Positions 2,792-63,482 of a DNA stretch of 64,000 nt are shown in pieces. Source of the stretch: Mytilus californianus. Its lineage: Eukaryota. The DNA lies in the NCBI RefSeq assembly GCF_021869535.1, contig NW_026262690.1, forward strand, positions 83,080,001 to 83,144,000, read 5' to 3'. Both the position numbers and the translations under genes were made by a program. Below the pieces are notes generated by a model. The model saw nothing but the letters and a program-made list of their open reading frames with translations. It was not told the origin of the DNA and made no database searches. Position 1 is the first letter of the stretch; each line of letters starts with the position of its first letter.

Positions 2792-5700
2792 TCAATTTTT
2801 GTTGCTTTGACTTCCTGAACACGGTCAACTAAGAAACGTGTATTAAACGCAGAAAAGTTTTTAAAACATAGGCGAAAGATACCAAAAGGACATTCAAACT
2901 CATAAGTTGAAAATAAGTTACCAACGCCATGGCAAATTACGCACAAGATGATACAAACATACCAGTTCCTTGTTTTTCAGTCTTGCTAGTGTCGGTAATG
3001 GAAGCTTTACTTTCTGGAACCCCTTTGAATGAAAGTTTTAAGAGAGATGAAAAAAACAATAGTATTAACATGTTTTCCTACTTTAACTAGATTTGTTTCT
3101 ATAGAAATCGACAACGTTGGACGACTCAAAACTGTCTATGACAAACAGGGCGATTTATTTTTTTTTCATCTAATTGTACTGCATGTATGTATTCTTAATT
3201 GATGTAACATTGAAGCAAACTCTCATACAGATTTAATACATATTGTAGTACTACCCCCCATCCTTTCCAAAAAAACACAAAAATAAACCCCAAAGAAACA
3301 CAATCACAAATGCAAATCAACCAAAAAATCTAAATAATAAAAAAAAACAAAAACAAAATAGAAAGCACCAATAAACAAAAATATTACAAACTACATAAAC
3401 AGGGGTTACAAAAGAATATGTTGTACATAGAGATACATTCATTAATAAAACATATATAATGTGTACTTTTTTAAATAATAACAATTCTATAACAAAAACG
3501 TAAAATCATAAAAAAAACTATTTTTGTAATGGATGTCAGTTTTATACCTTTAGCCCTATCAGTGAGTTCTATTTAATTAAACAAAAGCAATATTCAATAC
3601 TTAACGAGTGATTTTCAAATTATTTTTTTTTCAATTTGTTTACGCTTTTTTTTTGTTTCATCTCCATACATCCCATATACCATTGTCATTGATAATCAAT
3701 ATATAAAAACCTGAGTATACAGTTTTAAAAAAATTACCAGGCCAAGCATCTGACCATTTTCCATTCCACGACTCTTTACTGTTTGTCGACCCCTTTGTAC
3801 CTTTTTGTCCTAAAAATGAAACAATTCAATTCACAATATCAAACCGCACATTGAAATGTTGGGCACCTTTTTGCTTGTTGAAATACCACATGATGGGAAA
3901 GTTATTTTGAAAAATAAAAAAAGGCATGAGCTGAGATCTGATTATCATTATTGGTTTTTTACGTCATTCGTAATTCTCAATTATTATGGTTATAAATGAT
4001 CGTACATGCTTAAACAGAAGTATAACAGGACAAGAATATGAAGCCCTTACATTGCAGGGAGGAACTGTACAGCTGTTGTAAACAACTTTTTAGGAAACGT
4101 TGTAGACAGCACAGGCTGTACTGTTTACTTTGGTCATCTGTCTATTTTATACTTTAGACGTCAAAGCGTTTTATAGAATTTTCATGGACACAATTCTTCT
4201 AAATTCAAGATTTTAAGATGCGATTCTTGTTAACCATTCCGTTATATGCTTATATATTTACTAAAACTTACTTTTGGTAATATTTTTTATGAATATTTTT
4301 TTTTTTAGTTACTGAAAAGTATTTAGTTTCAAGTTACCAGGCATTTCCTGTTTCCATGCTTCGGCCCAAGATTTTGCCGTATCACTGTCTGACGAAGATT
4401 TTCCTACAACATGAGAAGCTAATTGAAAATTGAACATTTCTGAGATATTTTATGTAAAAAGATGATGGTTTATGTTTATTAGTCATTTGTGTTGACAAAG
4501 AATATTCTTTATATGTTCATTTTTCTATAAATTTACTGTGAATTTTTCGAAAGACTTTGGTTTTTCTACCCCAGCTATAGATTGCATTAGCCTTATTTGG
4601 CACAATTTTTTGAAACTGTGTTTTTTAATGCTCTTTAAATTCAAATTCGAATTTGATTAGGCCTTCTAACTGTTTTCATTCGAGCGTCACTGATGAGTCT
4701 TATGTATAACAAGACACGTTTGTGGTGTACAGAATTATAAGCCACTACTGGTGAACGGTTCGTTCCCTGGAGTATCACTAGTCTAGTAGTTAGAACTTTT
4801 GTGTTGGCATGAAATATCATTGAAATGTTAATTTTTTTGTCGATTTACTGTCTATAAAAAATGCTGAATTATTAAAACAAACTAAGGTTTTCTAGCTCCA
4901 GGTATAGATTGCCTCATCCTCATTTGACACAACTTTTTTTGATTTTCAGTTTCACTTTATTGCTCTTCAACTTCGTATTTGATTTGGCCTCCCAACTGCT
5001 TTGATTCGAGTGTGTCTCTGATGAGTTTTACGTATACGAAACGCGCGTCTGGCGTACAAATTATAAACCTTGTATTTTTTATGAGATTTTATGTATCAAT
5101 ATTTATAATAGAACAAAGAAACAGCAAATTTTCCACAAAAGTTGTTGGTGGTTTTTCTTACTTTGCAAGTTCTTTTTTGAATTTGGCTGCGACTAAAGAA
5201 TTATCATCAAACACAGGATATCAAATCTAATCATGTATGCTTATAGTTCTGCACTGCTATAACCTTTTAAATGCATTGGGCACATTTCATTGTGGAATTA
5301 TATGCGACTATCATACAAGTGAGAGGTTCAGCTAGCTATAAAACCAAATTTAATCCACCATTTTCTACATAAGGAAATGCCTGTACCAGGTCAGTAATAT
5401 GATATTTGTTTCCCATTTGATTGATGTGTTTGAGCTTTTGATTTTGCCATGTTATAAAGAACATTCCGTTTTGAATTTCCCTTGGAGTTTGGTATTTTTG
5501 TTATTTCACTTTTTGATTGATTTTGTATAGTATATTGCTTTGTTTTGCTATAACATCAGCGACTCTAGTTAAGAACCGCAGAAATGTTGAAATCCGTGCA
5601 AATACTATACATCCGGTCACATACCAAGAGCAAGTAGTACAACAGTTTTAGTTGTCCTAAATACTTAATATTTTCAAATGTTTGTCATTGTGATTTTATA

Positions 5701-8700
5701 TACTACCGTTAACCTATGGGTGTTTTCTCATTATTGCAGTGACCAATAGCTTCATCGATGTTTGCTTTAAATTGTTGGCGTTTTTATACATTAAGTATTT
5801 ATACTGTTTCCATTCTAACAACAATAAGTCCTGACTTAAACATGTATTATTCCATATTTATTTCAGATATATTTAACCCTTCTACCAAGAAATTTGTTTC
5901 GCATGCACACGTATAAAAATTGCGGTTTTTGTCCAACGCAATCATAGGTTTGAACGTTGTTTTCAATTTAGACTTATTTATATTTTTTCGTTTGGGCTTG
6001 TATTATATTTGCCTTCGGGTTTATATGATCCGTTCATCCTATTTTGACTCTTTAAAATTCAAGAGTCTATCCTAAATTGAGGTAAATTATATGGCCTTCC
6101 AAATACTGTTTCGATTGCTAACATCACTGAAGAGACATTAATTGTCGAAATCCGGATATGGTGTACAAATTTTTGCACCTCATGTTTGCGGTTTGCCATC
6201 TTTTCCGCAATTTTATTGTTTTCTATTTGGTATTAAATGAATAAATTAAATAAAGATTCATTTTGTTACATCTTGTGATCCGTTTATTTGGCAATCGCCA
6301 ATGGCAGTCAGCAGGGTTTAAGAACATCCGTTGTTCGACCTGTTAGTCAAATGCGTTTGTTTAAATATACTTTTTAATTTTTTTGGTCTTTTGGAAAATG
6401 TTGTTTGTGCTGTATTTAGACCCTTCTACCAAGAAATTTGTTTTGCATGCACACGTATAAAAATTGCGGTTTTTATCCAACGCAATCATAGGTTTGAACG
6501 TTGTTTTCAATTTAGACTTATATATATATATATATATACCTGGCCATGAGCCGTCCCATGTCTTCAGGTTATCTTTCCCTAAAAAGGAAAACAAGCGTAG
6601 GAAAATTAGATATTAATTACAGATGTATCGAACTTTCAAAACCTTTCAGACATTATGTCAACGTTAAAAAAAATTAAAATGCTCGAACGTAAAACAGACT
6701 TAAAACAAGTGGATGTAGACAATCTTTTACAAAAGCTATTGCGAATTAGGGTGTATACATGTACATTGATTATGACATTGTCCCGACACATGTAAAATGG
6801 TGTGGATGTCAATATTCATCAGTTAAAGACAGGGGTAGATTTTGTCGGGATTGAGGTGCATTTTCCTTTGAATAATGGCATACAGGGAAGGACTATTAGA
6901 TTTTTAGGGATGAGTCAAATGTATACATACGTCGTGAATCTACAATTGAAATAAAATTTAAATGAGAACGATATAACATACCATGCTGGTTATGGTTTCC
7001 ATGGCCAGTAACAATCAATTGTTCTTCATTTGCAGTATTCCCAAAATGTGTTTCTACATTTAATTCTGATGATGTTGTTTCTATTGTCGTCTGCTCATTT
7101 TTGCTTTCACCTGTAAATGATTTTTTTTGCTACAATATTCGAAAAAGAGATAGAGCCAATTTCTCTTAAATTTTTTTTTCACTCCAGGATCATTTTCAAA
7201 CTGTTTTCCAATCAATGAGAAATAATCATAATGACATGTACAGCTTCATTTGTGTACAAGATTTTGATGTATTTCTGAACATTATATCGTTCACATTTCT
7301 GAACGGTATATCGTTCAAATTGCAAACGCCCAAAGATTGTTCTAAGTGCAATTCTGTTCGATATGACCAATTTTATCGAAAAAAAAAACCTGATAGGATG
7401 GACATTCAAAGCCAAAACTAAACTCTTTTGGAAGTAACGCTATATGCTTTGTCTTTCAAACACAAATCATTTTTTGTTGGATAAGGATATTCTTGAAAAC
7501 AATCTTTGTTAAAAAAAATATGCAAAATTTGCACAGCAATATATTAATACTGTCTTCAACATCAATGTATATCGCTGAATAACTTTTTGAATTTATAAAC
7601 TTTATGGCTATGAATGTAGGAATCATTTCCTTGCTGTGCATGGGAAATCAAATTAACTTTCTTTGCTTTAAATCGTCAAAGCTAAACCGTATTACGAATA
7701 TGTAATATGTCTTCGAATTACTGGTTTTGAAGTGCCTTTGAAGGTAAACTAAAAATCAACGCTTCGGATGCACCATAAGTGTTAAGTGAACTAATTATTA
7801 TCAATAACAATAAGGAATAAAGAGTTGTCATTCTTTAGCTGTGAAACAAATAAATACTTGCAGTTTCATATATACAGTTCCGTACTATTCTACAGAGCAA
7901 TTAAAACTTTAGCATTTGACCCATTTTTAATTTGAGCTAAACTTAGAACTTAGATAAGCTAAAAATGGATATAAGCTATGGGTTACCTGTATTTGGCCAA
8001 GAACCATCCCATGTCTGCTTCCAAGCTTTCTTGTTATTTACTGAAAAATACAAAAATGTATATATATGGAACAGCTAAACCACCTGTTTGTGCTATGCAT
8101 TCAGTTTCGATGTGTTTACTACCATCAACTTGCTTAGAAATGGAAATAAGCTTAGACGTTGAATAAAAAAGAGCTAAAACTAATAATAAGCATATGAAGT
8201 ACCACTTACAGTTTTTAAAGTATTGGTTTGGATCATATTTTCCTAAAAATCCAAGATCCCCTGGAATAAAAGCTACAAAGAGACAAAACATTTATATTAT
8301 ATAAAAAAGATTCAGTATAGGTATGAACAATGGACCTCTATTCGATTGCAAGTTTTTAGCAATTTCTATATGTTTAACTTTATTCATTTATACTTGTCCC
8401 ATACCAATACTGGTGAACCGTCAGTAACATGCAAATTCTTCATCAGTATAGCCAATGTAGCCTATCCAGCGCACTTAGCATGATTGATTAATACAAGCAT
8501 TTTGGGTATGCTATAAGTTGCTTTTTCAATTCTCTTTGATAACGTTTATATTCGCTGGTTTTGGATATTTAATTTATATCTTTTTCGGTTATGTGGCTTG
8601 TCGTATGTTAATATGTCGTCGGCACTCCAAAAAAAACTTCGATCCTTTTCTGAATAAGGTTAAAACCGAAAAGATTTTCGGACGGAAATTGTTCTGTTTG

Positions 8701-11700
8701 ATTAACTATACCATTATATACAAGAGGGTGCGAAATATTAACAATGTCTTTAAAAATCAAAATTTTTTATTCATATTCCTTCAAATGATTCCAATGTTCT
8801 AATTTGTCTTTGATCCGAATTAAAAGATTGGAATGATTTCGGAATACTACGTCGTTTTTCATGAAAGATTTTTTTTAAACTTTGTACCCTCAGGAACGAC
8901 ATGTAGTGTTCGACCTGTTTGAATTTAGTTTATGCTAGAACATTTTAAAGGGTTGTGATTTCCAAAATTCATATTTTTAAAACATCAAGAATTAAACTAA
9001 AGCTTTGGTTATGTACACAGTGGAAAAGACATCTGACATACTAAATAAACTGTATTACCTAAATTACAAATTTTAACAAATCAACAAGAAACTTGGATAA
9101 GAAAAATTATTAACTAGGAGAACTTTCCATCTTCATCAATCGGCTAATCACGTCTGCTCCATACTAAGAATTTTTTCTTAAAATAGACTCAGCTGCTATG
9201 ATTGTTTTCATATCCGCAACTTTCCATTCTTGAGTAGTAACACCATATATGTCAAGGTCAAATCTCAATTGATATGATATGCCAAATTCTTATAAAACAG
9301 TTTTAAAAACAAAGTTACACTCTCATCTCAACTCAATAGCGGTCTTAGATCATTGTATGCCGGTGTAATCGTCTCGTCTGTGATTTTACCGATTGTGTCC
9401 TATTTCCGATTGTGATATTTTGACTACTTGAATTCGCATGCATAGCAGGAGACGCTTACCCTGTCGATGAACCCGTTCTATTTCCTTTTGAAATTCGTGC
9501 GATTCTTTCGGTTTTTAGTTGTTACCCTTATTTGCCCCTTCCTAATCGATTTACGAAATTTAAACATCGGTCAACTGCTGTTGTCTTAATTAATTTTAAA
9601 ACTGACCTTATCAATGTGACAAAGAAGAACGACTTATCCCTATTCACATGTTACACGAATTGAATAATTGTTATACATCGTAGTTTTGTAATTATTGCGG
9701 AAATCATATAATACCCTTTCTCAATAATAATGTTTCAACTCTGTCATACATCCTTCATGACAAATCCACGTCAATCCAGTACCATGACTGTTTTTATATA
9801 TATTCATTGCTTTAACACTTGCTAATGAATGTATATTAGGAATTACTTACCCTGTCGACGGCAAAAATCTTATTACTTTGAAGATTTATGAGATTAGTGT
9901 GTTTTTTTTTTATTTCCATCTCTGAATGTTTTACCTTATCAGCTGACATTCGTTGACAACCTCCATGTGATATGACGAAAACGTGAATATCAATCTTCAC
10001 ATACTCGACGAAACAACACATTTTTGGTTAAAAAAAAATGCACAAGGATCAATTTTGAAAAAAAATGTTTGCCCATAATTTAATTTCCAAACATTTATTG
10101 AAAATCTAGGCAAGTCGCATCAATCAGTCATATTATTTTGAATGGCAGACCATATTCACGTATATGGAATCAGTATTATATGCCAGTATGCAGATGTTCA
10201 AAAGTGTTTGTGTTGCGGGAGGGTCCACCTGAGCTATTATTGTCACTTGGCGTCCGTCGTCGTAGTAATTAAATAATAAAAAAACATGTCAATCTATTCT
10301 AAACTTCGCCATAATAAACCTATAAGTGTCTTCTTTAAAATTTGAGTAGATTATACTCATTACACAATTTTGTTTTACCGCCATGGCTTAATATAGAACA
10401 TAATGGTAAACAGCAAAGTAATCAGCAAATAGGTCATCATAATAGAAATCAACAGAAATCGATATTTGCAGTTATTTCTTATTAGAGTTATTGCCCTTAA
10501 ATGGCGTATTTAACCCATTTTCCGGTTTTTGGCTATTATTTCGGAAAACTAGAATACATGACCCCTATGGTACGACTTAAAAGACATTCAGGGAAATTCG
10601 TTTAAATTGTCTTATAGGACTTGCAAGGCGAATTGGCTCCATGCGTGTTCACAATAATCCTTATATATGATTACGTTGACTATGTCACTCTGCTAAGCAA
10701 CAAACATGGCCTTACTACTTTATATCAAGACAACTTTGTTTAAATATTGAACACACAGAGTGTTTTCAGATTTGAGACAGATTTATCAGTCTATTAAGCC
10801 CCCAGTCGATGAATCCTCGGTAAATATCGTGTGATTTCATAGTTTGGCTAATTAGGTTACACATGCGCAGTTAATCATGGAACTGGATTATTTTCATTGA
10901 TGTTTCTGCTATTTGTCAAACAATGGCCGCCACATTCAAACTTTTCAAAGGGGGACATATAGAGAAAATATATGTTAGTATAAAAATAAATAATCATGAA
11001 TAGCATTGCTCTTTAATTTATATAACTGTAATGCACATGTATCTACTTTTAGTGCCAAGCGAGAGGATCAGGCTCATGCTAGCCTCAAGTTAAAAGAGTA
11101 AAACACTACATACACACATCATTTGTCATGTTCAAAGTGACAGAGGCATCAGCAATTTAGATAGTAAAGATTAGAAAATACAAACAAAAAGCAAATAGGT
11201 AGTAATACATATAAAGATATGAGGGATGGTAAATGAGATAACTATACATAAAGACCAAATGACAAAGATGAAAACAATAACAAGTCCCCATACGGTGTTT
11301 TTAAATATTTCGGTATCACACGGGAAACTCCATACTAAAATTTACGACAACAACAACAAAAAAAAACGATTTTTAGATCCCTATTGTTACTTTTCCTTTT
11401 TTGTACGGTGATGTTCCTTTAGCTCAATCTTACAGTGTTTATTTATCCCAACTCGTTCGCTATGCCCGTGTCCGTACTGACGTTAAAGATTTTAATGAAC
11501 ATAATCTATGTATTACTGGTAAATAATTAATTCAGGGATTTCGTTATCACAAATTACTGAAAACCTTTACTACATTATTTTATAGATACAAACAGCTGTT
11601 TTGGAAGTTTTGATGGTACCTGTAGAAAGCTTATTATTAACGGTTTTATAACATCCTGATTTTTGCGGTGATGTTGCTTTGAAATCCCGTAAAACTAGAT

Positions 11701-13891
11701 ACTATCCAGGTAAGCCTATCGATCATTAAAAATAAACTTATTCTAAAAGGTTATCAATTTAATAAAATCGTTGAATATTGTTTTAATCTACTCATATTGA
11801 TTTTGTTATCAAAAATTTACATCGTAACTAAATATGTATTGCTATATTTATTAACACTTACTGTTCTACATCCTGTCGATACTTAAATTTTGGCATTGCA
11901 TAAGGGCATGTTTCCGAACGTCTTTACACCAAATCCATTGGATAGGTGCTAATTGATATTTTGTCTTGGATACATTTTTTTATTAGTTGTTATTGGCTCT
12001 TAACTAGCCTTCGGTAACTTTGAGTACCCTCAAATCGGTATTTTATATATCCAGTCAGGAACCTGTACTTCAGTGGTTGTCGTTTGTTGCTGTATACCAT
12101 AATTGTTCTTAATTTGTTGCTTTGCAAATAAATCAGGGCGTTAGTTTTCTCGTTTAAATTGTTTTACATTTTGTCAAGTCGGTGCCATGTCATTTGGTCT
12201 CCAGTGGATAGTTGTATCGATGGCAATCATATCACATCTCCCTATTTGATATTCTTTCAACTGATTTTTGAGACTTTTTCAATTTTCTATCATACATCCC
12301 GCGACAGGTTAACAGAAGTTAAGCGAAAGGTCTTTGGATACTCGTAAAGTTGTATGTTCATAATCATTATAAAAACAATAGCCAAAAACCGTAATGAGTA
12401 AGCTCTACGATATTTGGATTAAGAGTTGAATGTCAGGTTAAACCTGCTAACGTTAGGCGATTTGGCAACAAGCATGTTTTACAAGATGCAAAAGTTATAT
12501 ATATAAAATTTTATTTCTGTTAAATTATGCATACACCAAATGTTGTTACTGTGCTGAGTGTTGTAAAATTCTAGTTAACAACAGTGAACTACCCTTCCCT
12601 AGAAATAAAAATATGGTTATGTTGATTTTTGATTGCTTGTTGTTAAATATGTCTATTGTGGTATTCTGTATATAAGAAATGAATGCTTCTTTTTGTAATT
12701 TTATTGGGGTGTAAAAGCGGTGACCGAAGCAATGTTTGTTTCCGATCTGCTTCATACTAAGAATCTGCGCACGATCAACGCTTTTGCACAGAATAAAATT
12801 ACAAAAAGAAGCATTCAATCTTATAATTATATTTTTATGCTTTAGCCGGGAAAATCTTTTTTTTCTGTTTTTTTTCTCTATGTAATGTTGTCACGGGAGG
12901 CACGTGCTGTCATGGATGTTGCATTTTATTGAATGCCTCTCGATTGTTGTCAGGCAATCAAAAGTACAGATTCCTATGAAACATACATGTATATGTGTAA
13001 TTATTCATGGTTGGCCGTCACATTGACGTATGCAAAACGTCTTCTTTTATTCATATTATCTAAATAAATGAAAATTCAAAATAATTGCTTTCTTTGGTAT
13101 GTTTATTAATGATTAGTTTTATCATATTGATTCATGTTGTATTTAACCATTTTTTTAATAAGTGAAAAGTCTCTTGCAAAAATAACAGTGCACCTTTTTA
13201 CAATTAAACCCTTTTGCAATTGGAATTCAACGTAAATTAAATCTCTATCTCAACAGAATTTTGTAAATCAACAAATGTTTTAGAAAATATTGCTTACCAG
13301 ATTCTGTCTCCAAAGATCTTCCTAAAATTACAAAATATAAACCAAACAATAACTTGGTTGACATGATGGAATTATTCGAAAAGCACCTGTCCCGGTGACG
13401 CGCGCGTCATTGAAGATATGATATCAACCCGACATTGATAAGTAAGTTTATGTCTACAAAACGAGATATATAGATACCTTGAATTTTGAAAAATGATAAT
13501 TATATTCGAATTATCATGCATTATCTTGGAAAAAAACAATTATGTATACGAAGCTTTGAAACAGGTACAAAAATGTGGGGCTTACATAGCATTTTATTCT
13601 GTTTGGTGCTTACATTTATATACGACAGATTGCATGTATGATTATTCTTTTTATATTGCAAAGATTATGAAAATCGTGAATTTTGAACATCCACTGAACC
13701 TGTATTTTTTTTGGAAAAGGCATAAATAAAATTCTACGGAAATATATTGTTCACGACACTAATAAGACTTTATACGGTCATTGACTATACCATCTTCCGT
13801 TGACTCTTTTGGCTTTCTCGAAGTTTTGCTTTTTATTACCGAGTGTGTGAGCAACAAACAATGTAAATAATACGGACGTTCCGTGCCACAT
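2792..13891 (-). CDS. Gene D: secreted micro-exon protein with Trp motifs and one YDPN motif (~202 aa model)
   Basis: Exons 13891-13840, 13321-13298, 8914-8888, 8272-8210, 8040-7987, 7110-6982, 6578-6540, 4403-4338, 3809-3738, 3022-2963 and a tentative last exon 2814-2792. All introns are GT-AG and phase 1, and the join is stop-free: MWHGTSVLFTLFVAHTLG RSLETES GRTLHVVPE AFIPGDLGFLGKYDPNQYFKN LNNKKAWKQTWDGSWPNT GESKNEQ...GHGNHNQH GKDNLKTWDGSWP GKSSSDSDTAKSWAEAWKQEMP GQKGTKGSTNSKESWNGKWSDAWP GVPESKASITDTSKTEKQGT GSQSNKN*. The 3' end is uncertain and further micro-exons may have been missed. Confidence 0.7.
2963..3022 (-). CDS. Gene D 60-nt exon (GVPESKASITDTSKTEKQGT)
   Basis: Acceptor ctttcattcaaag and donor G|GTATGT; symmetric phase 1. 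Confidence 0.65.
3738..3809 (-). CDS. Gene D 72-nt exon (GQKGTKGSTNSKESWNGKWSDAWP)
   Basis: Acceptor tgtttcatttttag and donor G|GTAATT; Trp motif. Confidence 0.75.
4338..4403 (-). CDS. Gene D 66-nt exon (GKSSSDSDTAKSWAEAWKQEMP)
   Basis: AG/GT bounded, symmetric phase 1, Trp motif. Confidence 0.7.
5013..5054 (+). ncRNA. Minimal type-I hammerhead ribozyme motif, core intact but stems imperfect
   Basis: TGTCT-CTGATGA-GTTttacgtaTAC-GAAA-CGCGC-GTC-TGGCG: the conserved CUGAUGA, GAAA and GUC are present; there are mismatches in stems I and II. Confidence 0.55.
5877..6521 (+). repeat. Pair of 101-bp direct repeats (5877-5977 and 6421-6521)
   Basis: cccttctaccaagaaatttg...ttagacttat occurs twice with 2 mismatches, 544 bp apart. 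Confidence 0.9.
6122..6163 (+). ncRNA. Structurally intact minimal type-I hammerhead ribozyme
   Basis: Stem I CATCA/TGGTG, core CTGAAGA, stem II GAC-attaatt-GTC, GAAA, palindromic stem III ATCCGGAT, NUH triplet AUA with predicted cleavage after 6158. Confidence 0.7.
6519..6538. repeat. (TA)10 microsatellite directly at the 5' splice site of the gene D 39-nt exon
   Basis: Seen directly; the minus strand reads CCAG|GTATATATATA... Confidence 0.9.
6540..6578 (-). CDS. Gene D 39-nt exon (GKDNLKTWDGSWP)
   Basis: Acceptor ttgttttcctttttag and donor G|GTATAT; repeats the TWDGSWP of the 8040-7987 exon with different codons. Confidence 0.8.
6982..7110 (-). CDS. Gene D 129-nt exon (acidic, Thr-rich, ending GHGNHNQH)
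   Basis: Acceptor tcatttacag and donor G|GTATGT; 43 open codons. Confidence 0.75.
7987..8040 (-). CDS. Gene D 54-nt exon (LNNKKAWKQTWDGSWPNT)
   Basis: Acceptor tttttgtatttttcag and donor G|GTAACC; symmetric phase 1. Confidence 0.8.
8210..8272 (-). CDS. Gene D 63-nt exon (AFIPGDLGFLGKYDPNQYFKN)
   Basis: Acceptor ttttgtctctttgtag and donor T|GTAAGT; carries the family FIPG and YDPN motifs. Confidence 0.8.
8888..8914 (-). CDS. Gene D 27-nt micro-exon (GRTLHVVPE)
   Basis: Acceptor aacag and a weaker donor G|GTACAA; symmetric phase 1; resembles the exon-like segment at 6339. Confidence 0.55.
13298..13321 (-). CDS. Gene D 24-nt micro-exon (GRSLETES)
   Basis: Acceptor ttttgtaattttag and donor G|GTAAGC; symmetric phase 1. 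Confidence 0.7.
13840..13891 (-). CDS. Gene D exon 1 (signal peptide MWHGTSVLFTLFVAHTL)
   Basis: ATG, hydrophobic core, phase-1 donor G|GTAATA. Confidence 0.7.
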
Positions 13892-14687
13892 TGATATGGT
13901 TATTGTTTACTGTAGTGATTGTTCAGTCAAAGTGTGCTGTATGCATATACATTTGTGATTTTCAGTCACTTGTTTCTTACGATTTATATCTGTAGAATTT
14001 TATATGCGACGGTACAAAGGAGTATTTTGTAAATTGTTCTGTGTAATTTCAAGCAGCATAAAGAGAATAAAAGTACATTGTCTCATGTTTAAATCTTATT
14101 TGTGTTCGTCACAAGACAGCTCATATGCCGTATTCATAGCGCAACCTAGATATATTTTTGCATACATTTTGTCGTCTACTTGATGTTAAAAATTATCATT
14201 TATAACAAAATAATAGTTAAAGAATGCATTTAAGCGGTATTTTATATGGAGAGACATTTATATTGTAAAAAGGTACGTACCTGTTAATGGTACAGAAAAC
14301 CGATTACTAAATTTACCAGTTTGCCCACCTCCTGCAATACAAAGAACATTCTTAAATAAAAATCTTCAAAATATTTGATGTTTATCATTTGATGTTTATT
14401 ATTTTAGTTCATTATAGAGAGGCGAAAGATACCAGAGGGATGTTCAAACTCACAAGTCGAAATCAAACTGACAACACCATGGCAAAAAATTAAAAACGAC
14501 CAAAAGACAAACAGCCGTATACAAAACACAACATAGAAAACTAAAGACTTAGCAACAAGAACCCCACCAATATCCAGTGTGATATCAGGTGCTCCGGATA
14601 AAGATAACAAATAAAGAAATGATATTTTGTGTGCTTGCGTATTTGTTTATGTGGTAGCAATGTTCTTATACATTTTCTAAGACCAAT

Positions 14688-14908
14688 ATTCAAAATATGT
14701 TTATAAAGATAAATAACAGCCGTAAGTTTTTTCGTTGTTATAATTATGATCGCTTCGTGCTGCTCAGTCTTTAGTTTTCTATGTATTGTTTTATGGACTT
14801 ATTCAAAATATGTTTATTAAGATAAATAACAGCCGTAAGTTTTTTCGTTGATATAATTATGATCGCTTCGTGCTGCTTAGTCTTTTCTATGTATCGTTTT
14901 ATGGACTT
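14688..14908 (+). repeat. ~110-bp tandem duplication within the inverted pair of PLE-tail-like repeats (14417-14600 and 14860-15003), upstream of gene D
   Basis: attcaaaatatgttta...ttttatggactt occurs twice in tandem; the flanking repeat copies are in opposite orientation. Confidence 0.8.
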
Positions 14909-15440: not shown

Positions 15441-15556
15441 TTTTTGTTTGTAAAAGGGTTTAAGCACAGGACTATGTGCTTTCTCTGGAAGCGCTGTTGG
15501 CATTTACCTGGAGATAGAGGTTTTCATGAAATCACATTTGTTTATTTGAGTTCCAA

Positions 15557-15812
15557 TGTCCCCCGCGTTGCATATATTTTATATTTCCAAGGGGCATAAC
15601 TCTTTTAAAAAAGTCGATCGGCCACCATTATAGAAACTTGTCCGAGATATTGCTGATATTAACCTATAGTATAAGTTTTATAAAAATCTGGCAAGAATTG
15701 TACCTGTGAGAGCGCTAACAAGACCGGACGGACGGACACACGGACGGACGTACTGACGCACGGACGGACGACCGGAATTTCCATGTCTCCGCAACGCGTT
15801 ACGCGGGGGACA
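15557..15812. mobile_element. Non-autonomous bivalve MITE/HINE (pearl-like) element
   Basis: 12-bp inverted repeats TGTCCCCCGCGT (15557-15568) and ACGCGGGGGACA (15801-15812), an internal GGAC microsatellite (15726-15770) and a short 3' palindrome. Confidence 0.7.
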
Positions 15813-17573: not shown

Positions 17574-17953
17574 TTAGAAATTTAAGAGATCAAAACTCTT
17601 ACTTGCGCCTCTGGATGTACCAGATGTTCCTCCCATCATTGCGTTCATGGGATTCGTACCGCTACCACTCCCACTTCCGCTTCCGGATCCTCCCATCATA
17701 CCACTCATCATATTCATAGGATTCAAATTCATTCCACCTCCGCTACTGCCCCCCGTGCTTCCACCACTGCTTCCGCCTGTACTCATAACTGAATTAGCCC
17801 CACTCATCATTCCAGAGGATCCACCCATTAATGAACTTGCATCCATTTTGCTTGGGTCTCCACCTTTAGCTCCGCCAAACATGTTTAAGCTTGTACCTAA
17901 CTGAGCTTGTTGCATATTGACAGAGCCAGGATCAAAGCCACCGTTAGTTTTAC
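17574..17953 (-). CDS. Gene A terminal exon (FDPGSVN, GDPSKMD, LNPMNMM, Met/Gly-rich)
   Basis: ORF 17574-17966 trimmed to the acceptor at 17954. Confidence 0.88.
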
Positions 17954-20900
17954 CTGTAACATTCATAGTTCAAATCCAGTCAAGAAACAACAATGATAAT
18001 AATTTTGACGGTATCATTACGTTATTACCAATCTTGGTTAACCTTAACACATAAAAAATCCTCTTTTCGGAAGACCAAATATTGTTACAACTATCTCAAA
18101 ATAATCCTTTTTATGAATAAAAAGAGATACCATGGGTTATGCGTCAATGAGACAGAAATCCAACGTTACAATTAACCAAAGTGCATATACAACTACAACT
18201 ACAGACTGTACGTGTAGCGTATACATATCTCCACTGCAAACATTTTAAAATGCATCCTTAATTATCAAATCAATTACTAGTGTCGAAAAGAATATTTTTT
18301 GAAAGTAAAGAACACCTTCTCGATTTCTTCAGTTTAGGCCACAGTTGGGTTTTTTAGTTTTGCGTCCGTTTGCTGGTAGATTTTTAATGGTCTGCGGTAT
18401 ACAAAAAGACAAACGCAAAAATATTTGAGAAAATCGTACAAAAATCAAGAAATTATTATTCTAAGGCTTCATTTGAACTTTATACATGTGTAATGATCTC
18501 CTTAATCAGTATTTTGTTCAAAATTTAAAATATTATATATTACTGAATTGCAGTTTGTTGAATAAATTATTGAACAAGATCGATTTCCGTGTTAAAAATT
18601 TATTTTTGGGTGTATATTTAATCTTATATGGCCCTAGCTGAATTTGATAATTTATAGTTCTTAGTTCATTTTAGAATAAACAATGTACTATGCCACAAAA
18701 AAAAATCAGAATTAACTTTATATGTTCAATAGGAGAGTGCTGTATCCACGAACAATGTTTCACCATAAAAGTTTACATGCAGAGATGCTATAAATGCAAA
18801 GGTTTTAGGCGGAATTCAGCGTCTTGAATTTCGACATCTTAAAATTTAACAAATTTTAAAGAACATTTTGTTTCCATGAATCAACTTGACTGAAAAAAGA
18901 GGAATCATCCATCTTTTATTAGTTTCACTCAAAGTATTAAATAGGAAAGTCGTTGAAACTTAGTGGATTTGAATGTTTAAAACTCTGGATAATACGATTT
19001 AAAGAGTTTCATCAATTTTACATACAGTCTTAACAAAACATTATTCAAAGCTGAAAAGTTTTGATATGCTATTGCAAAGTTTTCATGTTTTGTCAAATTT
19101 TGCATCGAAGGACATCCGGTACCAAAATAAATTAACTTGCTTCTTAACGATAATAAGAAGCTTTACTTCCGCTAGAACTTTGTTCTATTTGAAATTCTCT
19201 TTCTTTCTCATTTCTTTTTAAAAGTTACCAAAATATACAAAAGAAAGCAATTTTGTAAGTTATCTCAAAGCTGTATATAATAGGGTAAAGTGTTCAGAAT
19301 ACAATGTAATGTTGTTAGCAGTTCAAGTTACACACATAAAGCCGTGATAAACATTGCATTTTATTCCAGTTGAAAAGATTTTGAAAGAGGCCCCGCTGTG
19401 AAATTCTTTTGGAAATTGGCTCTACCTCCTTATCCTCTAGGAATGACATTTTGGATGAATTTTATAATCTTGGTATTTCTGAGTAAATAAAGTGGTAATC
19501 AGATAAACTACCAGTCTGTATTTATATGATACTGTTATTGTAGATATTTACCACATCCTGTTTTCGGTCCCATGAATTTACTCATAGTATTTCCTCCTAT
19601 AAAATATAAGAATAGTAACTAAATAAGCTAAAGTGTGCATAATCTATTAGATGTATGTATAGAAGGAAAAAAAAAACAATTCATGTTATCGAACAAATAT
19701 TTCTATCATATATATTCCTCAGTGAAGGTCAACGTTCATGAAATACATTTGTATTGCAGCACGCAATTACAGCTAAATATGTTGAAATATAAAAATTCCT
19801 TTAGAGAAATTAAGTTTCCAAACATTTACTGAAAAGTTTGCATAGATGTTTTTTAATTTGACTTTTCTTGTGATAGTTTTACCCAAAACAGTAGTTGTCT
19901 AATCTGCACAATTATCAGTTCGTGGACATCAATCATACCTAAAAGCGGATTTAGTGGGTTAAAACCGGAAGTTCCTCCTGTATTGGCGGCTACTGGATCA
20001 AAAGAAGCTTGTTGTCCGCAATTTGACTGTTGACTTGTTGCTTGTTGTTGACCCCCTCCGACAGACTGAGGCTGCTGACTACCAGAGCCAGATTGAGGCT
20101 GTTGACTTCCAGAGCCAGATTGAGTCTGTTGACTACCAGAGCCAGATTGAGGCTGTTGACTACCAGAACCAGATTGAGACTGTTGACCCAATGCTTGACC
20201 AAAACTTGATGCTGAAGACTGTGATGGTTGACCTGAAGCTTGTCCAAAGCTAGATGCTGCCGATTGTGGTTGCTGTCCTGAGGCTTGGCCAAAACTAGAC
20301 GGGGACTGTGATCCGGATTGTTGGCTTGGTTGACTCGTAGTCTGTTGCCCACCAGGCGGTTGTTGTTTTGCATTAAACCCCATACCGTTTGCAAAAGATG
20401 GTTTTGCTCCCCCTGAAGAACCACCCATTCCACTGTTTGCAGCATTAGGGTCATACTTGGCGCCAGTATTTACAGCATTGTTTGGGTCATACTTTGGCAT
20501 TGTGTTTGAACTGCTACCACCACCACCACCATTCATTTGTTGTGCTCCACCAGACATCATCTGATTCTGATTGAATGACATTCCACCGGATGTTCCGCCA
20601 GATCCACCCGATGACATCTGTGCATTTGGGTTAAACATACCAGTTCCAGATGACTGACTTGATTGTGCAGGACTATTTGTTGACTGAGATGATTGACTCT
20701 GTTGGGAATTTTGTCCACTGTTTGAAGGTTGCTGTTGACCTCCCATCATGGCATTCGGATTAAACATACTTCCTCCTGATCCACCTGATGACTGAGACAG
20801 ACCACCAAATTGACCTCCACCAGAGCTGCCACCAGAGGTGCCACCAGATCCACCCGATGACATCTGCGCATTCGGATTAAACATACTACCTCCTGATCCA

Positions 20901-23341
20901 CCTGATGACTGAGACATACCTCCACCGGAACTGCCACCAGAGGTGCCACCAGATCCACCCGATGACATATGCGCATTCGGATTAAACATACTTCCTCCTG
21001 ATCCACCTGATGACTGAGACATACCTCCACCAGAGCTGCCACCAGAGGTGCCAACAGAACCACCCGATGACATCTGCGCATTCGGATTAAACATACCAGT
21101 TCCAGATGACTGACTAGAACTTCCTGACTGCTGAGGATTACTTGTCGACTGTGATGATTGACTCTGCTGTGAACTTTGCCCACTGTTTGCAGGTTGCTGT
21201 TGACCTCCTCCCATCATAGCATTAGGGTTAAACATACTTCCACTAGAACCTCCACCTGTGTATTGGGACATCATCTTATTAGGGTTGAAGCTTCCATACA
21301 AAGAAGATGAGGACGAAGATCCACCAAGGAAACTCCCCATCATTGAATTAGGATTAAAACTTTGTCGGACTGTAAGAATTGTATTACGATTAAAATCAGG
21401 ACTATCAAACAACATTGAATAAATACTATCTAGAAATATATATACATGTATATGTTAATATCAGGAATATAATACTAGTATATAAGTTTGCGACGTTGTG
21501 TTGATTTTTCATCGTTATGTCTTCATTTATATTTTGTGAGGCCTATCTAGTCCTTTGCTACATGTAAAAAGTGTAGTTTTCTTTTTCAATATCTCCATGG
21601 ATATTAAAGACAAAACGGTTTGCAAAGAATGATAGGCTGATGGTACAATTCACTGTGGGTGACCTATTATGAGGTCCATCGTGGGAACTAACTGCTAATA
21701 TCATAATCAAAATTTATCACTAATTACAAGGCATCAGCTTAAGCATTTCTTGATTATCAACGTTTTCAATTCGTTTCGAAGCACCCGATTTCATACCCGG
21801 ATTTGGTGGGGTTCGTGTTGCGCAATATTTGGTAGCAATACACAGTTATGAGTTTGGTTTCGCATTTTTGCCCCTGTGAATTTTTCAAATATGAAAGTTA
21901 TTGTGCAATAAAATCAATTATTAGATAGCTGAAGAATAATATAGCCTTCAAAGTGAGTTCATATGAACATCCAGTTTGTTTTTTGCATGTTTTATAGGAC
22001 ATTTTCTGTTTGACAGTCCGTATTTTCACATCCGGTACTGTCATAGGTCCAGAAATTATTGCAATGTTTTCCAACAAATATTTTAAGCTCGAACTTTTCA
22101 ATTCAATTTTATGGAAAAAAGAGAAAAATGCATATGTTTTTTATTGGATCTCTTGATAGATAAATGTCAATGATTTTAGAAAAGGCATCTTTCAAATGGA
22201 TTGAAATTCTACTTTGGACAAAATTATGGGGCATTTGTGACATTTTCACCCCCTTTTTGCAATATTTGTATCAAATAAATGCCGATTGTTGCCATGGTTA
22301 CACCAAAAAGAGATTATATTTCGCCATTTTAATCATTGGAAATGAAATCTAAATGCTGTTTCTAAACATACGCACACACATTATACAACCAGTAAGCCTA
22401 ATTTGTTACAAAGCAAGGGAAAGAGGGTGGTTAAAAATTGTGAGTGTCAATTTTAAGTTCTTTTCCTAACTGTGTATTGCTACCTTTAGTTTTCTCTTTT
22501 TTTGTGTATTGTGGACTTGTTTGTCGTTTCGTCGTTTTTCGTGCTTTGCCATGACGTTGTCTGTTTATATTCGTCTTATGAGTTTTTTTTAATGTCTCCT
22601 TGGTATTTTTCGCACTTTTTTATGTTATAATAAAATGTCATCTTTATTGTGTAGAACTGCTGACCCATCCGGAATCCTCGGTTTTTGGTTGCTACATGGT
22701 GCTCAATGTTTAGTTTTCTGTGTTTTGTTTTGTGGACTTGTTTATCTGTTAGTCTTTTTTTTTTATTTTGACGATGGTATTCCTGTCTTTGATCGACTTA
22801 TGGTATTGATTACAATTTTATGGTATCTCCCTTCTCTCTTTTTTTTTTAAATTAAAAATGTGAATTTGGTCTATATGACACGTGATCTCAAAGATTATAA
22901 ATCTAAAATAAATATGCTTTGTAAGTACCAGATACCGATCCAGGATTTTGAAAAAGGGGACCGCAGGCCCCCAAACTAGACAAAATGTGTAGAGGAACCG
23001 GTAAAAAGTCTGGATTAACCATAAATGCGGGCACCCCGCCCCCCTCTTCCCCCTTAAATCCGCCTCTGAGTACGTAATCAAAAACCTCCATTTCGATATC
23101 TGATTATGCGTAAGGGTGTTTGGAGTTGAACAGTGGTTTTGCTTGACATCTCATCCGTGACGCTTGTTTTCTCAATGACATTTGACCGATTTACATAAAT
23201 TATAAATACGTAAAATAGATTTTTTTTTTAGAATTTCATCGCGAAAGTGTTGAAGGTGACAAATTCAGACTCACCATTTCGGTCAGTTCTGGTCACAATG
23301 ACCATACACAAAAATGTAAATATTGTATTTAACGGTGCCAT
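17574..23341 (-). CDS. Gene A: secreted Gly/Ser/Gln/Met-rich protein with FNPN repeats (625 aa model)
   Basis: Exons 23341-23275 (MAPLNTIFTFLCMVIVTRTDRN, donor G|GTGAGT), 21369-19939 (acceptor cttacag, donor G|GTATGA) and 17953-17574 (acceptor gttacag, ends TAA TAG). All introns are phase 1 and the total of 1878 nt is in frame. Confidence 0.85.
19939..21369 (-). CDS. Gene A exon 2 (477 codons of MFNPNA-(G/S)n and SQQPQSGSG repeats)
   Basis: Core of ORF 19853-21415 trimmed to splice sites; contains ~105-bp and 27-bp internal repeats. Confidence 0.92.
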
Positions 23342-24879: not shown

Positions 24880-25245
24880 GTTAATACGAGGGAGACAATT
24901 TACTCTATCCCATGGCAAATACTCTACCACCCTTCACGGAGACGCTTGCTCAAGTGTGCGCTTTAATAAATACGGATTATTGTTATGTACAAGACGACAT
25001 AGTTTATTATTATACTTTACGTAAAATGCAATATTTTGATTGGCTTATACGAGGGTGTTAATTTACTCTATTCTATGGTAAATACTCTATTACCCTTCAC
25101 GGAGACGCTTGATCAAGTGTGCGCTTTATTAAATACGACTCTATCCTATGGCAAATACTCTATTACCCTTCACGGAGACGCTTGATCAAGTGTGCGCTTT
25201 ATTAAATAAGGATGGTTGTTATGTACAAGACGTCATAGTTTATTA
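24880..25245 (+). repeat. ~165-bp tandem duplication with a nested 73-bp re-duplication
   Basis: actcta..cccttcacggagacgcttg.tcaagtgtgcgcttta..aaata at 24902, 25065 and 25138. Confidence 0.85.
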
Positions 25246-29819: not shown

Positions 29820-31006
29820 CCTAGTTTCATTATCTTTTAAAGTACTTACACTTGTAAATATTATAATCCTATTAAAGAAAAGAAAGTATAAGTTACAATC
29901 CTATCAAGGAATAAAAAATATAAGTACTTAATATAAAAATATCTACATAGATTTAAGCATTATTATATATATTATACGAGCAAGTCAATAGGGACCAACC
30001 GCATTTGGTAAACTTGGTTTTGAAACTTTTAATCGGATAAGTTACGAACTATTATTTTCACTTTTATTCGTTTAGAAATTAAGACATGTCAATGGGTACA
30101 TCAAATATGAAAACAGGAGATGAAAAGCGCGCGAAAAAGAGATAAACATCATCCACGTTCAGAAATCATCCCCTTTTTTAGAGTCTGAAAAGGCACATCT
30201 TAGCATTCCAAAACAATAATTGTACGATGATTGACATTTCTCCGATTGATTTGTGCATTCTGATAATAAGCTAGTTACATTGCATAATAACAGAGAAGTA
30301 TTAAGTATTGATTAGGCGGTATTGCAAGAATACTTAATCCATGTCTGTAAATTTGTTCATTTTCCTATATAATATGAATAAAAATAAATGTTGGATATAC
30401 TTAAAGGAGAGAACAACCTAGCAGATATAAAATAATATGTTGATTTCAACCTCAGATTTTAAATGATGGACACATCCATATCCTATCTCATGTTCTAAAT
30501 TATTTCAGTATAGACAAGTTGCGAATGAATTGAACAGGGAATACTTAAGATCTTTAATAGCGACCCCAATCTTTATATAAAATGAAACAAAAAGAAGCAC
30601 GTTGAGCTTGAAAACACAGTAAAACTCGAAAGCTTTATACACAATGTAAAATGAAGACAACATCGATGTTTGGCGCATATTTGGATGACCATGTTTTGAA
30701 CATGTTTTTTTATATATTCGGTGACACATCCGTTTAAAAGATTTACGGTGCCATTCTTTCTTTTTACATCTGGGAAACAGTAGTGCATGAAAATGGAATG
30801 TAGAGCAAACATACACGCTATTAATTAAACAAATATTTAAACGATCTATAGCCCTCGGATCAAGTTTTATTTTCTTGTTTTATCTATATATATATATTGC
30901 ACTGTTAGTTTATATGCCGTTCATAACACTTATTTTCCCGTAATTGACATATTCCTGAAAAATTCCCTTCAAGGAGGTTTTATTGGTTACATAAATCACA
31001 TATTAC

Positions 31007-31546
31007 CTCTCTTCCCTAGTTGGTTTTGTGGATTAAAAAAGTTAAATGTTTTGGAGTTGAATTGATCTGGATCAAATCCACCACCGCTTCCTCCACTTTG
31101 TCCCAATTTTGATGAGGATGGATCTAACATGTTGGCTTGTAATTGGTTAACCTTATTTGCGTCGAACTTTGGAGGCTGACTTCCACTACTGCTGCCACCA
31201 CCACCGCTTCCACCGCCACTAGTCTGTGCTTGTGGATTAAAGAAATTGAACTTCATAGTGTTGAACTGGTCCGGGTTAAACATAGCTCCGCCGCCTCCAC
31301 CTGAACCAAGCTGTGACTTGGAAGGATCTAGCATACTGGATTGTACTTGATTAACCTTATTAGGATCAAAGTTTGGTGGCTGACTTCCACTGCTACTAGA
31401 ACTTCCACCGCTGCTGCCACCGGAACTTCCACCGCTGCTGCCACCAGAACTTCCACCGCTGCTGCCACCAGAACTTCCACCGCTGCTGCCACCAGAACTT
31501 CCACCGCTGCTGCCACCGGAACTTCCCTGACTTGTTTGTCTTCTAC
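31007..31546 (-). CDS. Gene B exon 5 (24-bp GSSGGSSG repeat x5, two modules, ends NQLGKR)
   Basis: 540 nt, symmetric phase 1; acceptor ttctattcag. Confidence 0.9.
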
Positions 31547-43300: not shown

Positions 43301-44338
43301 ATAGTAGTTTTTGGTCTATTTTAAATTTGTCTTTTTGCTGTACAATCAATGAGTTATCCCACACGTTTACTTCGTTGTTTTTATATATACATCTTACAAA
43401 TACTGATAATTTTTTGAAAGACGTTTATGAAGTTCAGTCGACTATGCAATATGAATATATATTTAAATAAAATCGTCATAGATACCAGGCTTAAAATTTT
43501 GTACACCAGACGCGGGTTTTGTATGAAACTCACCAGAGACACTCGAATCAAAAAAGTTAAAAGGGCCAAATAAAGTAAGAAGTTGAAGAGCACAGAGGAC
43601 CCAAAAAATCGATGTAGACCTTATCATATGTCTGCATTAATTCAAGTGCCTGTGGTTTAATGATTATTTGATAGTTGTTGTTTTACGCTCCCGGAGAAGC
43701 ACGAAAGAACAATATTGATGACATCAACTTATGATGAAATGATAGGACACAAAACGGAAATGAGTTTCGACAGCAGCATGAAATATATGTACAGTGAGCA
43801 ATTCAGTCGTTATCGTAAGTTGCTGTCTGTCATATTTGTTTTTCGTGTATTGTGTTGTCGTACCACATCTTCTTATTTTAAAAGGGTAAAAACATTCGGC
43901 ATTGGCTTCTTCAAACGGATGATGCTAGATGCAATACTAGGAAAGCGACATTATACCAACACTGGTTAAGCATTGGAAACATCTAGCACAATTGCGAACA
44001 CCCTTACAAGGGGAGAGTCTCACAACTCATTGAAGAGTGTACCCGGAAACAATACATATACGGAAAATATAAATCGTTATAAAAGCGAAAAACAAGTATC
44101 GTTCAAATAAAGTACAATTGCTTAACTAATAATATTAAAATGATCTTAACGTGGTAAATTGAGTTTTGTGTTTTTACGAAAACTAAATTTAAGTTATTAT
44201 ACAACAATATAAATGAAAGATGTTTTAGAAATTCATGAAAAGACAACAGAAGTTTTATCAAATCATCTTGTGTTAAAAAAGAAACTTGAAATACACACCT
44301 GATATCAGAAATCCAACTAAGATGGTAAAAAATGTCAT
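40376..44338 (-). CDS. Gene C: large secreted Asn/Ser/Met/Gln-rich protein with ~25 [FY]x-P motifs (897 aa model)
   Basis: Exon 1 44338-44299 (MTFFTILVGFLIS, G|GTGTGT) plus exon 2 43029-40376 (acceptor ttttcttttcag) completes the signal peptide ...ISGCFCVS-LP and runs through the 880-aa ORF. Confidence 0.88.
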
Positions 44339-62522: not shown

Positions 62523-63482
62523 ATGAAGGGTTGTCTAGCTCTTCTTTGTCTCCTTCCAATCTGTCTATCGGCTCCACTATCTGGTAAGCACATAAAATCT
62601 ATATAATGAAGAGAATTTAAAGTTTGAATAGGATTTTCGTTTTGTGAAAATACAAGCCTTGGGTTTCGAATAACTTAGTAAAACTTCATGTTATTAAGAA
62701 AGGCAGTCTGTAACTATAAACTTATTTAAAATTTGGAATACAAGTACTAATATTCAAGCAATATTATATTATAAAGTGTCCATACATACTGCTTATTATT
62801 GGAGGGAGCGGTCTTTTAAATGATTGTCATTAGAGCAAAAGACGATTGGCTCGTGGTAATATTTCTGATTTCTTACCTCTCATAAATCTATTTGGAATAC
62901 ACTACATATAAATTTTACGATTTCCTACTAAGAGACTTCCAGACTAAAGATAAAAGAAACATACAACTTGTTCGTAAAGATGCAATTATTTCAAACTAGT
63001 TTGTAAAATATGGTATTGTGAAAAAATATTTTTACAATGTATTATTGATTGTATAAATATATTCCGATTTAGATGGGACTTTTGACCCGAACGCTCTAAA
63101 CAAGGATTTTGGTACTGGTGGTTTCGCCGGCAGTGGTGGATTTGGAACTGGCACAGGTGGTAGTTTTAATCCAAACGCTTTGAACCAAAACTTCGGAGGA
63201 GGTGGATTCGGCTCCATGTCAACATTTGCCGCATCGACTGTTGCTCCTTCTGGGACAACTGAAACATTTGATCCTAATAAAGTAAACAACTTCGGTAGCG
63301 GAACTGGATTTGGAGGAAGTGGTTTCGGTACAGGAAGTGGAAGTGGAACTGGAGGTTTTGGTTCCGGAACTGGTTTCGGTAGTGGTGGAAGTGGAACTGG
63401 TACCTTTGACCCGAATAAACTTAATGGTGGTACTGGAAGTGGTACCTTTGATCCAAATAAGCTCAATAGTTTTGGAAAATAA
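62523..63482 (+). CDS. Gene E: small secreted Gly/Phe/Thr-rich protein with five F[DN]PN motifs (156 aa)
   Basis: Exon 1 62523-62583 (MKGCLALLCLLPICLSAPLS, G|GTAAGC) plus exon 2 63073-63482 (acceptor gatttag; DGTFDPNALN...TFDPNKLNSFGK*). Phase 1; AATAAA at and just after the stop. Confidence 0.9.

Follow-up and report, generated by a model that had tools for sequence, protein, structure and literature searches.

What kind of protein is encoded by a group of mussel genes that share one short aromatic-Asx-Pro motif (Asx being Asp or Asn) and little else, and what could have preserved it? The genes, here called A to E, lie on contig NW_026262690.1 of Mytilus californianus (assembly GCF_021869535.1, positions 83,080,001 to 83,144,000 of the forward strand), a stretch of 64,000 nucleotides that we call the window and that is AT-rich (about 33% guanine plus cytosine) and has no runs of N. 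A preliminary description of this DNA had proposed a five-gene cluster for secreted proteins in which FDPN-type stickers alternate with polar spacers. Genes A, B, C and E are borne out by the analyses reported here, while D remains a prediction and is mostly not visible. With a probability that we put at roughly one half, the results point to disordered proteins that would be cut by proprotein convertases, amidated and used as building blocks of an extracellular material from a restricted tissue or stage, encoded by a conserved cluster that is restricted to bivalves.

Examination of the six reading frames of the window for [FY][DN]P[NSD] showed that nearly all matches fall in a few long open frames:

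Gene A frame, 19856 to 21454, minus strand: 533 codons, 10 matches
Gene B frames, 30999 to 31559, 32492 to 32950 and 33030 to 33368, minus strand: 3 matches in each
Gene C frame, 40379 to 43042, minus strand: 888 codons, 13 matches
Gene E frame, 63057 to 63479, plus strand: 141 codons, 5 matches
Gene D short frame, 8037 to 8291, minus strand: 1 match

The preliminary description had named shuffled sequences as the test of its motif, and we compared each frame with 5000 composition-preserving shuffles of itself. The four-residue motif, counted 10, 3, 3, 3, 13 and 5 times in A, the three B frames, C and E, respectively, reached shuffle means of at most 0.23 and maxima of at most 3, and the seven-residue form (4, 2, 3, 3, 11 and 5 copies) reached means of at most 0.013, so that both stand far above the shuffled frames. 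The element can be written as hydrophobic-Asx-Pro/Ala-x-x-hydrophobic-Asn and recurs each 10 to 45 residues between spacers rich in Gly, Ser, Gln, Asn and Thr (the stretch FDPNKVNQVQSSML spans the motif). As [FY]-[DN]-[PA]-x-x-[VLMF]-N it is carried in 5 to 16 copies by A, B, C and E, C having 16 motifs when Ala and Thr variants are included. The strings quoted earlier are all present, with FDPNKVN in B, C and E, FNPNAMM in A and C, YDPN in A, C and D, and FIPG in C and D. Replacement of Pro by Ala is tolerated (FDANKVN, FNADTLN, FDANQVN), and when 15 sequences of C are aligned, most of the columns without variation fall on the motif residues F, P, N and V/M/L.

The gene models give proteins of 625 (A), 527 (B), 897 (C) and 156 (E) residues and consist of the following exons:

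Gene E exon 1, 62523 to 62583, plus strand: 20-residue signal peptide, phase-1 donor CTG/GTAAGC
Gene E exon 2, 63073 to 63482, plus strand: Gly/Thr/Phe-rich, 5 motifs, ends ...FDPNKLNSFGK-stop (a Gly-Lys end of amidation type)
Gene C exon 1, 44299 to 44338, minus strand: signal peptide MTFFTILVGFLIS, phase-1 donor
Gene C exon 2, 40376 to 43029, minus strand: Asn/Ser/Thr-rich; the middle is Thr-rich and mucin-like, and motifs are dense in the C-terminal third
Gene B exon 1, 35150 to 35210, minus strand: signal peptide MAWTTIILATLLVSHAFAIS, phase-1 donor GTG/GTAAGT
Gene B exon 2, 33553 to 33805, minus strand: starts V-RQANSTS, Gly/Ser-rich, with a 30-bp repeat (VTQSGGSSGG)
Gene B exon 3, 33074 to 33345, minus strand: Gly/Ser spacer and one 52-residue module
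Gene B exon 4, 32500 to 32946, minus strand: spacer and two 52-residue modules
Gene B exon 5, 30996 to 31546, minus strand: expanded SSGG repeat, ends ...FFNPQNQLGKRGNM-stop
Gene A exon 1 (predicted from sequence), 23275 to 23341, minus strand: signal peptide MAPLNTIFTFLCMVIV..., phase-1 donor AATG/GTGAGT
Gene A exon 2, 19939 to 21369, minus strand: Ser/Gly/Gln-rich, with 105-bp internal repeats and 10 motifs (FNPNAMM, FNPNAQM, KYDPN), ends ...FNPLNPLL-G at the splice border
Gene A exon 3 (likewise predicted), 17574 to 17953, minus strand: starts (G)K-TNGGFDPGSVN, Gly/Ser/Met-rich tail, ends ...SKSFDLLNF-stop

Each of the five genes was said to have its own signal-peptide exon followed by a phase-1 intron. 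All of them do have a short hydrophobic exon that opens with Met and whose GT donor follows the first base of a codon, an architecture seen in the sequence of A, B, C and E and predicted in D. Signal peptides were judged heuristically from this hydrophobic Met-initiated first exon, and by that heuristic exon 1 of A, B, C and E provides the N-terminal signal peptide that a prohormone would have. Exon 1 of C is the annotated N-terminus of its orthologues in M. coruscus (protein P0001, identical), M. galloprovincialis and M. trossulus, and the E model is consistent with a gene call of 158 residues in M. galloprovincialis. The A model derives solely from splice signals, compatible phases and conservation in Pinctada.

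Splicing of B was examined with the reads and contigs of four RNA runs against positions 30400 to 35500. In a close relative, RNA contigs from two runs (X1 and X12) belonging to two studies show each of the four B introns spliced out, and these runs cover every B exon. The joints were found at 35150/33805, 33553/33345, 33071/32943 and 32497/31430, the last with 17 bridging letters. The last two resolve to 33074/32946 and 32500/31546, the final one lying at the SSGG repeat, and after resolution of this aligner ambiguity all four (4/4) show GT..AG on the minus strand and match the predicted exon borders. Exon 5 (30996 to 31546) is a recent duplicate of exon 4 (32500 to 32946), with 94% protein identity.

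Some further observations concern the DNA of this gene. In exon 5 a 24-bp repeat coding for SSGG has grown to 5.7 copies (31390 to 31526), and a transcript of a close relative is without most of this expansion. Two stretches inside B introns (31597 to 32280 and 33820 to 34161) are multicopy repeats with a depth in the thousands in every RNA run, next to exons with zero depth in the window's own species. Loose read ends cluster at 33951, 33959 and 33999 and look like element boundaries, and the repeats are probably a transcribed short interspersed element or one resembling a miniature inverted-repeat transposable element.

The cluster is old, tandem and restricted to bivalves. In Pinctada imbricata the corresponding locus carries an E-like gene (minus), C (plus), a B-like gene with three module exons (plus) and an A-like gene (plus), in the same order and orientation as in the window, and M. 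galloprovincialis has E (minus), C (plus) and B (plus). A, B and C pair one-to-one between Mytilus and Pinctada, the A-like exon lying downstream of B and the E-like gene at the same relative position. Orthologues of C show 95% identity in M. coruscus, 88% in both M. galloprovincialis and M. trossulus and 35% in Pinctada imbricata, each value being measured over the best local match to the C-terminal part used as query, so that the window's species is a Mytilus close to M. coruscus. Relatives of C occur in several further bivalve assemblies, and B-like and C-like genes lie on one contig in another assembly. An exhaustive search with a profile of the B module returned 27 proteins only among 1.84 billion representatives. 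All those with an organism name are bivalve, from the scallop Mizuhopecten yessoensis and from Potamilus streckersoni (Unionida), in which a B gene of several exons and a second gene that has a signal peptide of its own lie on one contig, about 20 kb from each other. The homologue and synteny check that the preliminary description had called for therefore yielded a cluster order shared with Pinctada and B-type genes in a scallop and a unionid. For A the Pinctada locus provided the only orthologue, none being annotated elsewhere; a word-indexed protein search with the entire A exon brought up an excess of low-complexity candidates, and one with the less repetitive residues 288-372 returned nothing.

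Comparison with M. galloprovincialis gave ratios of nonsynonymous to synonymous substitution rates (dN/dS) of 0.00 for E, 0.09 and 0.15 for B (0.09 in exon 4) and 0.25 for C. In E, where positions 63073 to 63482 were compared with 266-694 of the M. galloprovincialis contig L001, the protein is 100% identical over 129 aligned codons in spite of a dS of 0.19, which is unusually strict for a Gly-rich spacer protein. The low dN/dS values, including the identity of E, therefore indicate that the spacers too are under constraint. Spacer length and the number of module exons vary between species, as is typical of structural repeat proteins: the main exon of E encodes 141 residues here and 347 in Pinctada, and B has 527 residues here and 343 as annotated in M. 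galloprovincialis, with one module exon fewer. Shematrins, thread matrix proteins and Pif resemble the family in forming tandem arrays with fast-changing repeat lengths, in being secreted and in having the signal peptide on its own exon. In contrast to such proteins, order and orientation are kept from mussel to pearl oyster, B-type genes reach scallop and unionid and Tyr is nearly absent, and it is unusual among them that a module of 52 residues should be 54-77% identical in mussel and pearl oyster.

C is annotated as 'uncharacterized protein LOC143068882' in M. galloprovincialis and, by mislabelling, as 'homeobox protein 2-like' in M. trossulus. The annotation of Pinctada imbricata merges the B-like and A-like genes into one product of 1435 residues (L002:14069-22331), and that of Potamilus splits the exons of one B gene into genes of 461, 118 and 146 residues; because of these fused and split annotations we regard automatic models of the family as unreliable. 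The claim that the family is undescribed, paralogous, secreted and of low complexity is supported, with no match in Pfam, the PDB or the open-access literature. Pfam gave sub-threshold noise only (PI31_Prot_C, Nse4-Nse3_bdg, DUF7084), the PDB sequence search only a chance match to ubiquitin (E 0.79), and the ESM Atlas look-alikes of a B exon, with scores of at most 0.62, were uninformative. In the open-access literature the motif strings and accessions occur in no paper, and a looser search brought up P450 papers only.

No fold is predicted for these proteins. AlphaFold2, run with alignments, gave a mean predicted local distance difference test (pLDDT) of 55 for a B double module and of 36 for C, with predicted template modelling scores of 0.15 and 0.21, and only residues at about 690-730 of the C model, its best-conserved stretch, reach pLDDT values of 66-75. 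On these models the proteins are best read as disordered, in line with the sticker-and-spacer layout first proposed, with aromatic motifs spaced in polar low-complexity spacers. Nearly all the short helices in both models begin at the motif Pro, or at the Ala replacing it, and the hydrophobic residues of the motif are fixed one position before Asx and four after. According to the rules of helix capping, an Asx with hydrophobic residues at those positions is an N-capping residue with a hydrophobic staple. The preliminary description had taken the motif for an Asx-Pro beta-turn like that of the NPNA repeats of the Plasmodium circumsporozoite protein. The Asx-Pro-Asn core is indeed present, but because Ala replaces Pro and the motif starts helices, an N-cap with hydrophobic staple would be favoured over an obligatory turn, which fits less well, and judging from these low-confidence models it is at least as likely as the beta-turn. 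In further contrast to the circumsporozoite repeats, the motifs are not tandem tetrapeptides, have fixed flanking hydrophobic residues and have no sequence match in the PDB. Regular spacing of aromatic residues in polar Gly/Ser/Gln/Asn spacers, together with predicted disorder, recalls FG-nucleoporins and other sticker-and-spacer proteins, and E and its Pinctada counterpart, rich in GFG/GFGSG, recall 'glycine-loop' proteins such as loricrin. Unlike FG-nucleoporins, the family is predicted to be extracellular and its sticker is a defined element of seven residues and not bare FG, with no homology between the two. The mature regions are poor in Cys (0-0.2%) and Tyr (0-2.1%), as had been noted, and Tyr at this level rules out adhesives of the 3,4-dihydroxyphenylalanine (DOPA) type, which are high in Tyr and Lys, in agreement with the earlier statement that these are not DOPA-type foot proteins.

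The gene that tells most about processing is B. Its module is exactly 52 residues long, with no insertion or deletion in 13/13 copies compared, and 20/52 columns are invariant between Mytilus and Pinctada (identity 54-77%). In the spliced protein the modules are followed by ...FFNPSAMTAG-RRRR-QASQ... at the exon 3/4 border and by ...FFNPQNQLG-KRGRR-QTSQ... at the exon 4/5 border, both internal basic clusters being formed across the exon junctions, and G-KR stands at the end. Pinctada and Potamilus share this arrangement, with G-RR at exon ends and RRQ at exon starts. In the relatives from the database, 15/24 module ends have directly after them two to five residues, Gly and Lys/Arg, with a near variant in 3 more, and among the other ends are those of first modules that lie inside double units. 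The modules of P0042, a scallop protein for which no contig was found, are directly consecutive and linked by nothing more than LGRRRLTRQ or LGKRR. The last residues of E are Gly-Lys and that of its Pinctada counterpart is Gly, and in A the first junction reads R-N-V-R/Q and the one before the last exon ...LL-G-K. We infer that the basic clusters of B mark convertase cleavage, C-terminal amidation and possibly an N-terminal pyroglutamate, in which case the released units would measure about 150-190 residues here and about 55 in the scallop homologue.

Placed into a scheme, these signals suggest that the proteins would enter the secretory pathway and be processed there. Proprotein convertases would cut B between units at RRRR and KR-G-RR, and could also cut at RNVR after the signal region of A and at the Gly-Lys near or at the ends of A and E. 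An exposed C-terminal Gly would then be converted to an amide, and a new N-terminal Gln may cyclise. The released units would build an extracellular gel, glue or organic matrix, in which the conserved motifs, probably as short N-capped helical turns with Phe and other aromatic residues, may give specific contacts and the spacers would supply length and hydration. Production would be limited to a tissue or life stage missing from ordinary adult RNA, larvae, juveniles or a small secretory epithelium being possible. Elastomeric or coacervate behaviour, in ligament, periostracum, byssus or egg coat, is a proposal of the preliminary description only, drawn from sequence features.

The RNA data fit a restricted and shared expression, in what is a small test. 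In RNA of the window's own species the B exons have zero depth, both in a 1.55-gigabase sample of X21 and in X22, and sampled sequence words of A or C are next to none in runs X22-X24. Runs of the relative from three studies (P1-P3) contain both A and C, at least 8 runs being shared. The spliced B contigs come from runs chosen for containing C (X1 and X12), in which the uncalibrated assembler word depth of the B exons is about 80-400 and 2-37, respectively. Of the co-expression and junction check named in the preliminary description, the B junctions were thus confirmed and A, B and C were found in the same libraries of the relative. The label 'merc' presumably denotes a catalogue assembled from marine plankton metatranscriptomes. 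One B-type protein has this source (ERR1711860), and a plankton-derived sequence would hint at expression in a larval or planktonic stage. Two contigs of relatives (L003 and L004), considered as transcripts that might tell the tissue, were rejected as genomic since they carry intron sequence upstream of the main exon. The text of the Mytilisepta expression atlas mentions low-complexity proteins without names in foot, gill and mantle and gives no sequences.

Several points weigh against processed building blocks of a material. Likeness between the paralogues is limited to the motif, and a common descent of A, B, C and E would rest on the motif, the architecture of exon 1 and linkage. C has no conserved dibasic sites, and conservation of a module at fixed length, as in B, is more typical of a ligand or binding domain than of bulk material. 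The co-occurrence test just given is small and relies on runs with coded metadata. Finally, the proteome search proposed earlier found the motif absent from the ligament, nacre, prism and shell supplements of Pinctada and M. galloprovincialis. This absence is weak evidence because A, B and E, with few Lys and Arg, would largely escape tryptic mass spectrometry (tryptic peptides of usable size make up 18% of A, 18% of E, 52% of B and 67% of C).

An alternative that we consider unlikely, and that nevertheless survives best, takes B, and perhaps small members such as E, for a precursor of secreted peptides that would signal as hormone, neuropeptide, pheromone or cue for settlement, with the amidated 52-residue module as the ligand, the Gly/Ser stretches as dispensable spacers and the cluster as a family of peptide precursors. 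B has the classical layout of prohormone and neuropeptide precursors (for example those of FMRFamide type, processed by convertases and peptidylglycine alpha-amidating monooxygenase), namely a signal peptide, repeated units followed by Gly and multibasic sites (G-RRRR, G-KR-G-RR and G-KR) and Gln at the new N-terminus, and Gly-Lys C-terminal ends add to the likeness. The fixed length and the invariant columns of the module, the near absence of spacer between the modules of P0042 and the low or absent expression in ordinary RNA samples all fit such a precursor. Mature peptides are usually shorter than about 50 residues, whereas the units of this family would have 55-190, mostly of low complexity, those of Mytilus and Pinctada (150-190) being largely Gly/Ser spacer. 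A, C and E (156-897 residues) are without internal cleavage sites, A apart from its ends, and no sequence likeness was found to any named prohormone precursor. The spacers themselves are under strong purifying selection (E being identical at a dS of 0.19), a survey of neuropeptides in scallop ganglia does not list sequences of the family in its supplements, and the word depth of B in X1, uncalibrated as it is, is unlike that of a rare neural transcript.

We regard as quite improbable that the proteins belong to a shell-associated organic matrix from a small zone of the mantle, be it an abductin-like elastomer of the ligament, the periostracum or the larval or adult shell matrix. Occurrence in all bivalve orders sampled, including unionids, whose adults lack a byssus, fits a structure common to bivalves, and a tiny secretory zone would explain the absence from ordinary tissue RNA. 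Cleavage has a precedent in the shell matrix precursor Pif, which is cut at a dibasic site. Abductin, an elastomer rich in Gly, Met and Phe from the hinge ligament of scallops, is built on a decapeptide repeat of Gly and Met (GGMGG type) and is not known to carry the F-D/N-P-N motif. The family shares with it secretion, scarcity of Cys, richness in Gly and the presence of Phe and Met, the Gly/Ser/Met-rich tail of A and E being closest in composition, but GGMGG-type matches number 0 and Gly (7-31%) and Met (0.7-7.1%) depart from abductin, to which the preliminary description had compared the family. The motif does not occur among the top insoluble proteins of Pinctada ligament, nacre and prisms listed in the supplement of PMC7591529, which gives only the two best matches per tissue, nor in the supplement of the M. 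galloprovincialis shell-layer proteome (PMC4517812). C, given its tryptic peptides, should have been detectable. Acidic residues are almost absent from A and B, unlike in many mineral-binding proteins. A ligament origin was rejected as the leading idea, the listed Pinctada ligament proteins being without the motif.

The reading that simple repeats gave rise to the open frames by chance, or that these are decayed pseudogenes, as their low-complexity composition, the tandem DNA repeats inside exons and the zero depth of B in X21 and X22 might suggest, is refuted by the spliced transcripts of the relative, by dN/dS values of 0-0.25, by orthologues and synteny with Pinctada and across bivalve orders and by intact frames of 141-888 codons, and has a negligible probability.

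A wider and more tentative statement embraces both uses of the proteins, and we give it a little less than even odds taken as a whole. According to it the family would be a new class of disordered proteins with N-cap and hydrophobic-staple motifs, cut by convertases and amidated, the 52-residue domain would be new, the products would serve as bivalve material or as signals, possibly larval, and the cluster would predate the split between pteriomorph and palaeoheterodont bivalves. That split is of Cambrian-Ordovician age. Lineage-restricted secreted proteins of low complexity are abundant in bivalve genomes and usually turn over too fast to be traced, whereas here the gene order and orientation of an entire cluster are the same in mussels and in pearl oysters. 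This synteny, together with a B module whose cleavage and amidation signals are kept as far as scallops and freshwater mussels, therefore indicates a conserved function, one without a name in any proteome or annotation. If the proteins are amidated building blocks, they would represent an unusual use of prohormone-processing machinery for structural proteins, and as a material they would offer a defined short motif for biomaterials work; if they signal, B would found a new and large family of bivalve peptides. With the gene models and splice junctions reported above, the choice between material and signalling can be tested directly.

Gene D is a prediction whose visible parts are its first exon and one cassette:

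Gene D exon 1 (predicted), 13840 to 13891, minus strand: MWHGTSVLFTLFVAHTL, phase-1 donor CTCG/GTAATA
Gene D cassette of 63 nucleotides, phase-1/phase-1 (predicted), 8210 to 8272, minus strand: encodes FIPGDLGFLGKYDPNQYFKN

The cassette is the only motif-bearing piece of the predicted gene, and a tblastn search of the D region (2800 to 14000) with the other family members found only the KYDPN pentamer. A strict scan of this region for splice sites gave the FIPG/YDPN cassette and two 'TWDGSWP' cassettes unlike the FDPN family. The latter (8040 to 7987 and 6578 to 6540, minus strand) are phase-1/phase-1 candidates with good splice signals and encode NNKKAWKQTWDGSWPNT and KDNLKTWDGSWP, respectively. 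Recurrence of TWDGSWP suggests from the sequence that D, if real, may be mostly another kind of repeat protein.

The other open reading frames of the window have no Pfam match and the window itself has no Rfam match. Between the genes we observed two tandem duplications of 2 copies each, of 113 bp (14687 to 14908) and 73 bp (25065 to 25208), and a (CGGA)n microsatellite (15725 to 15770).

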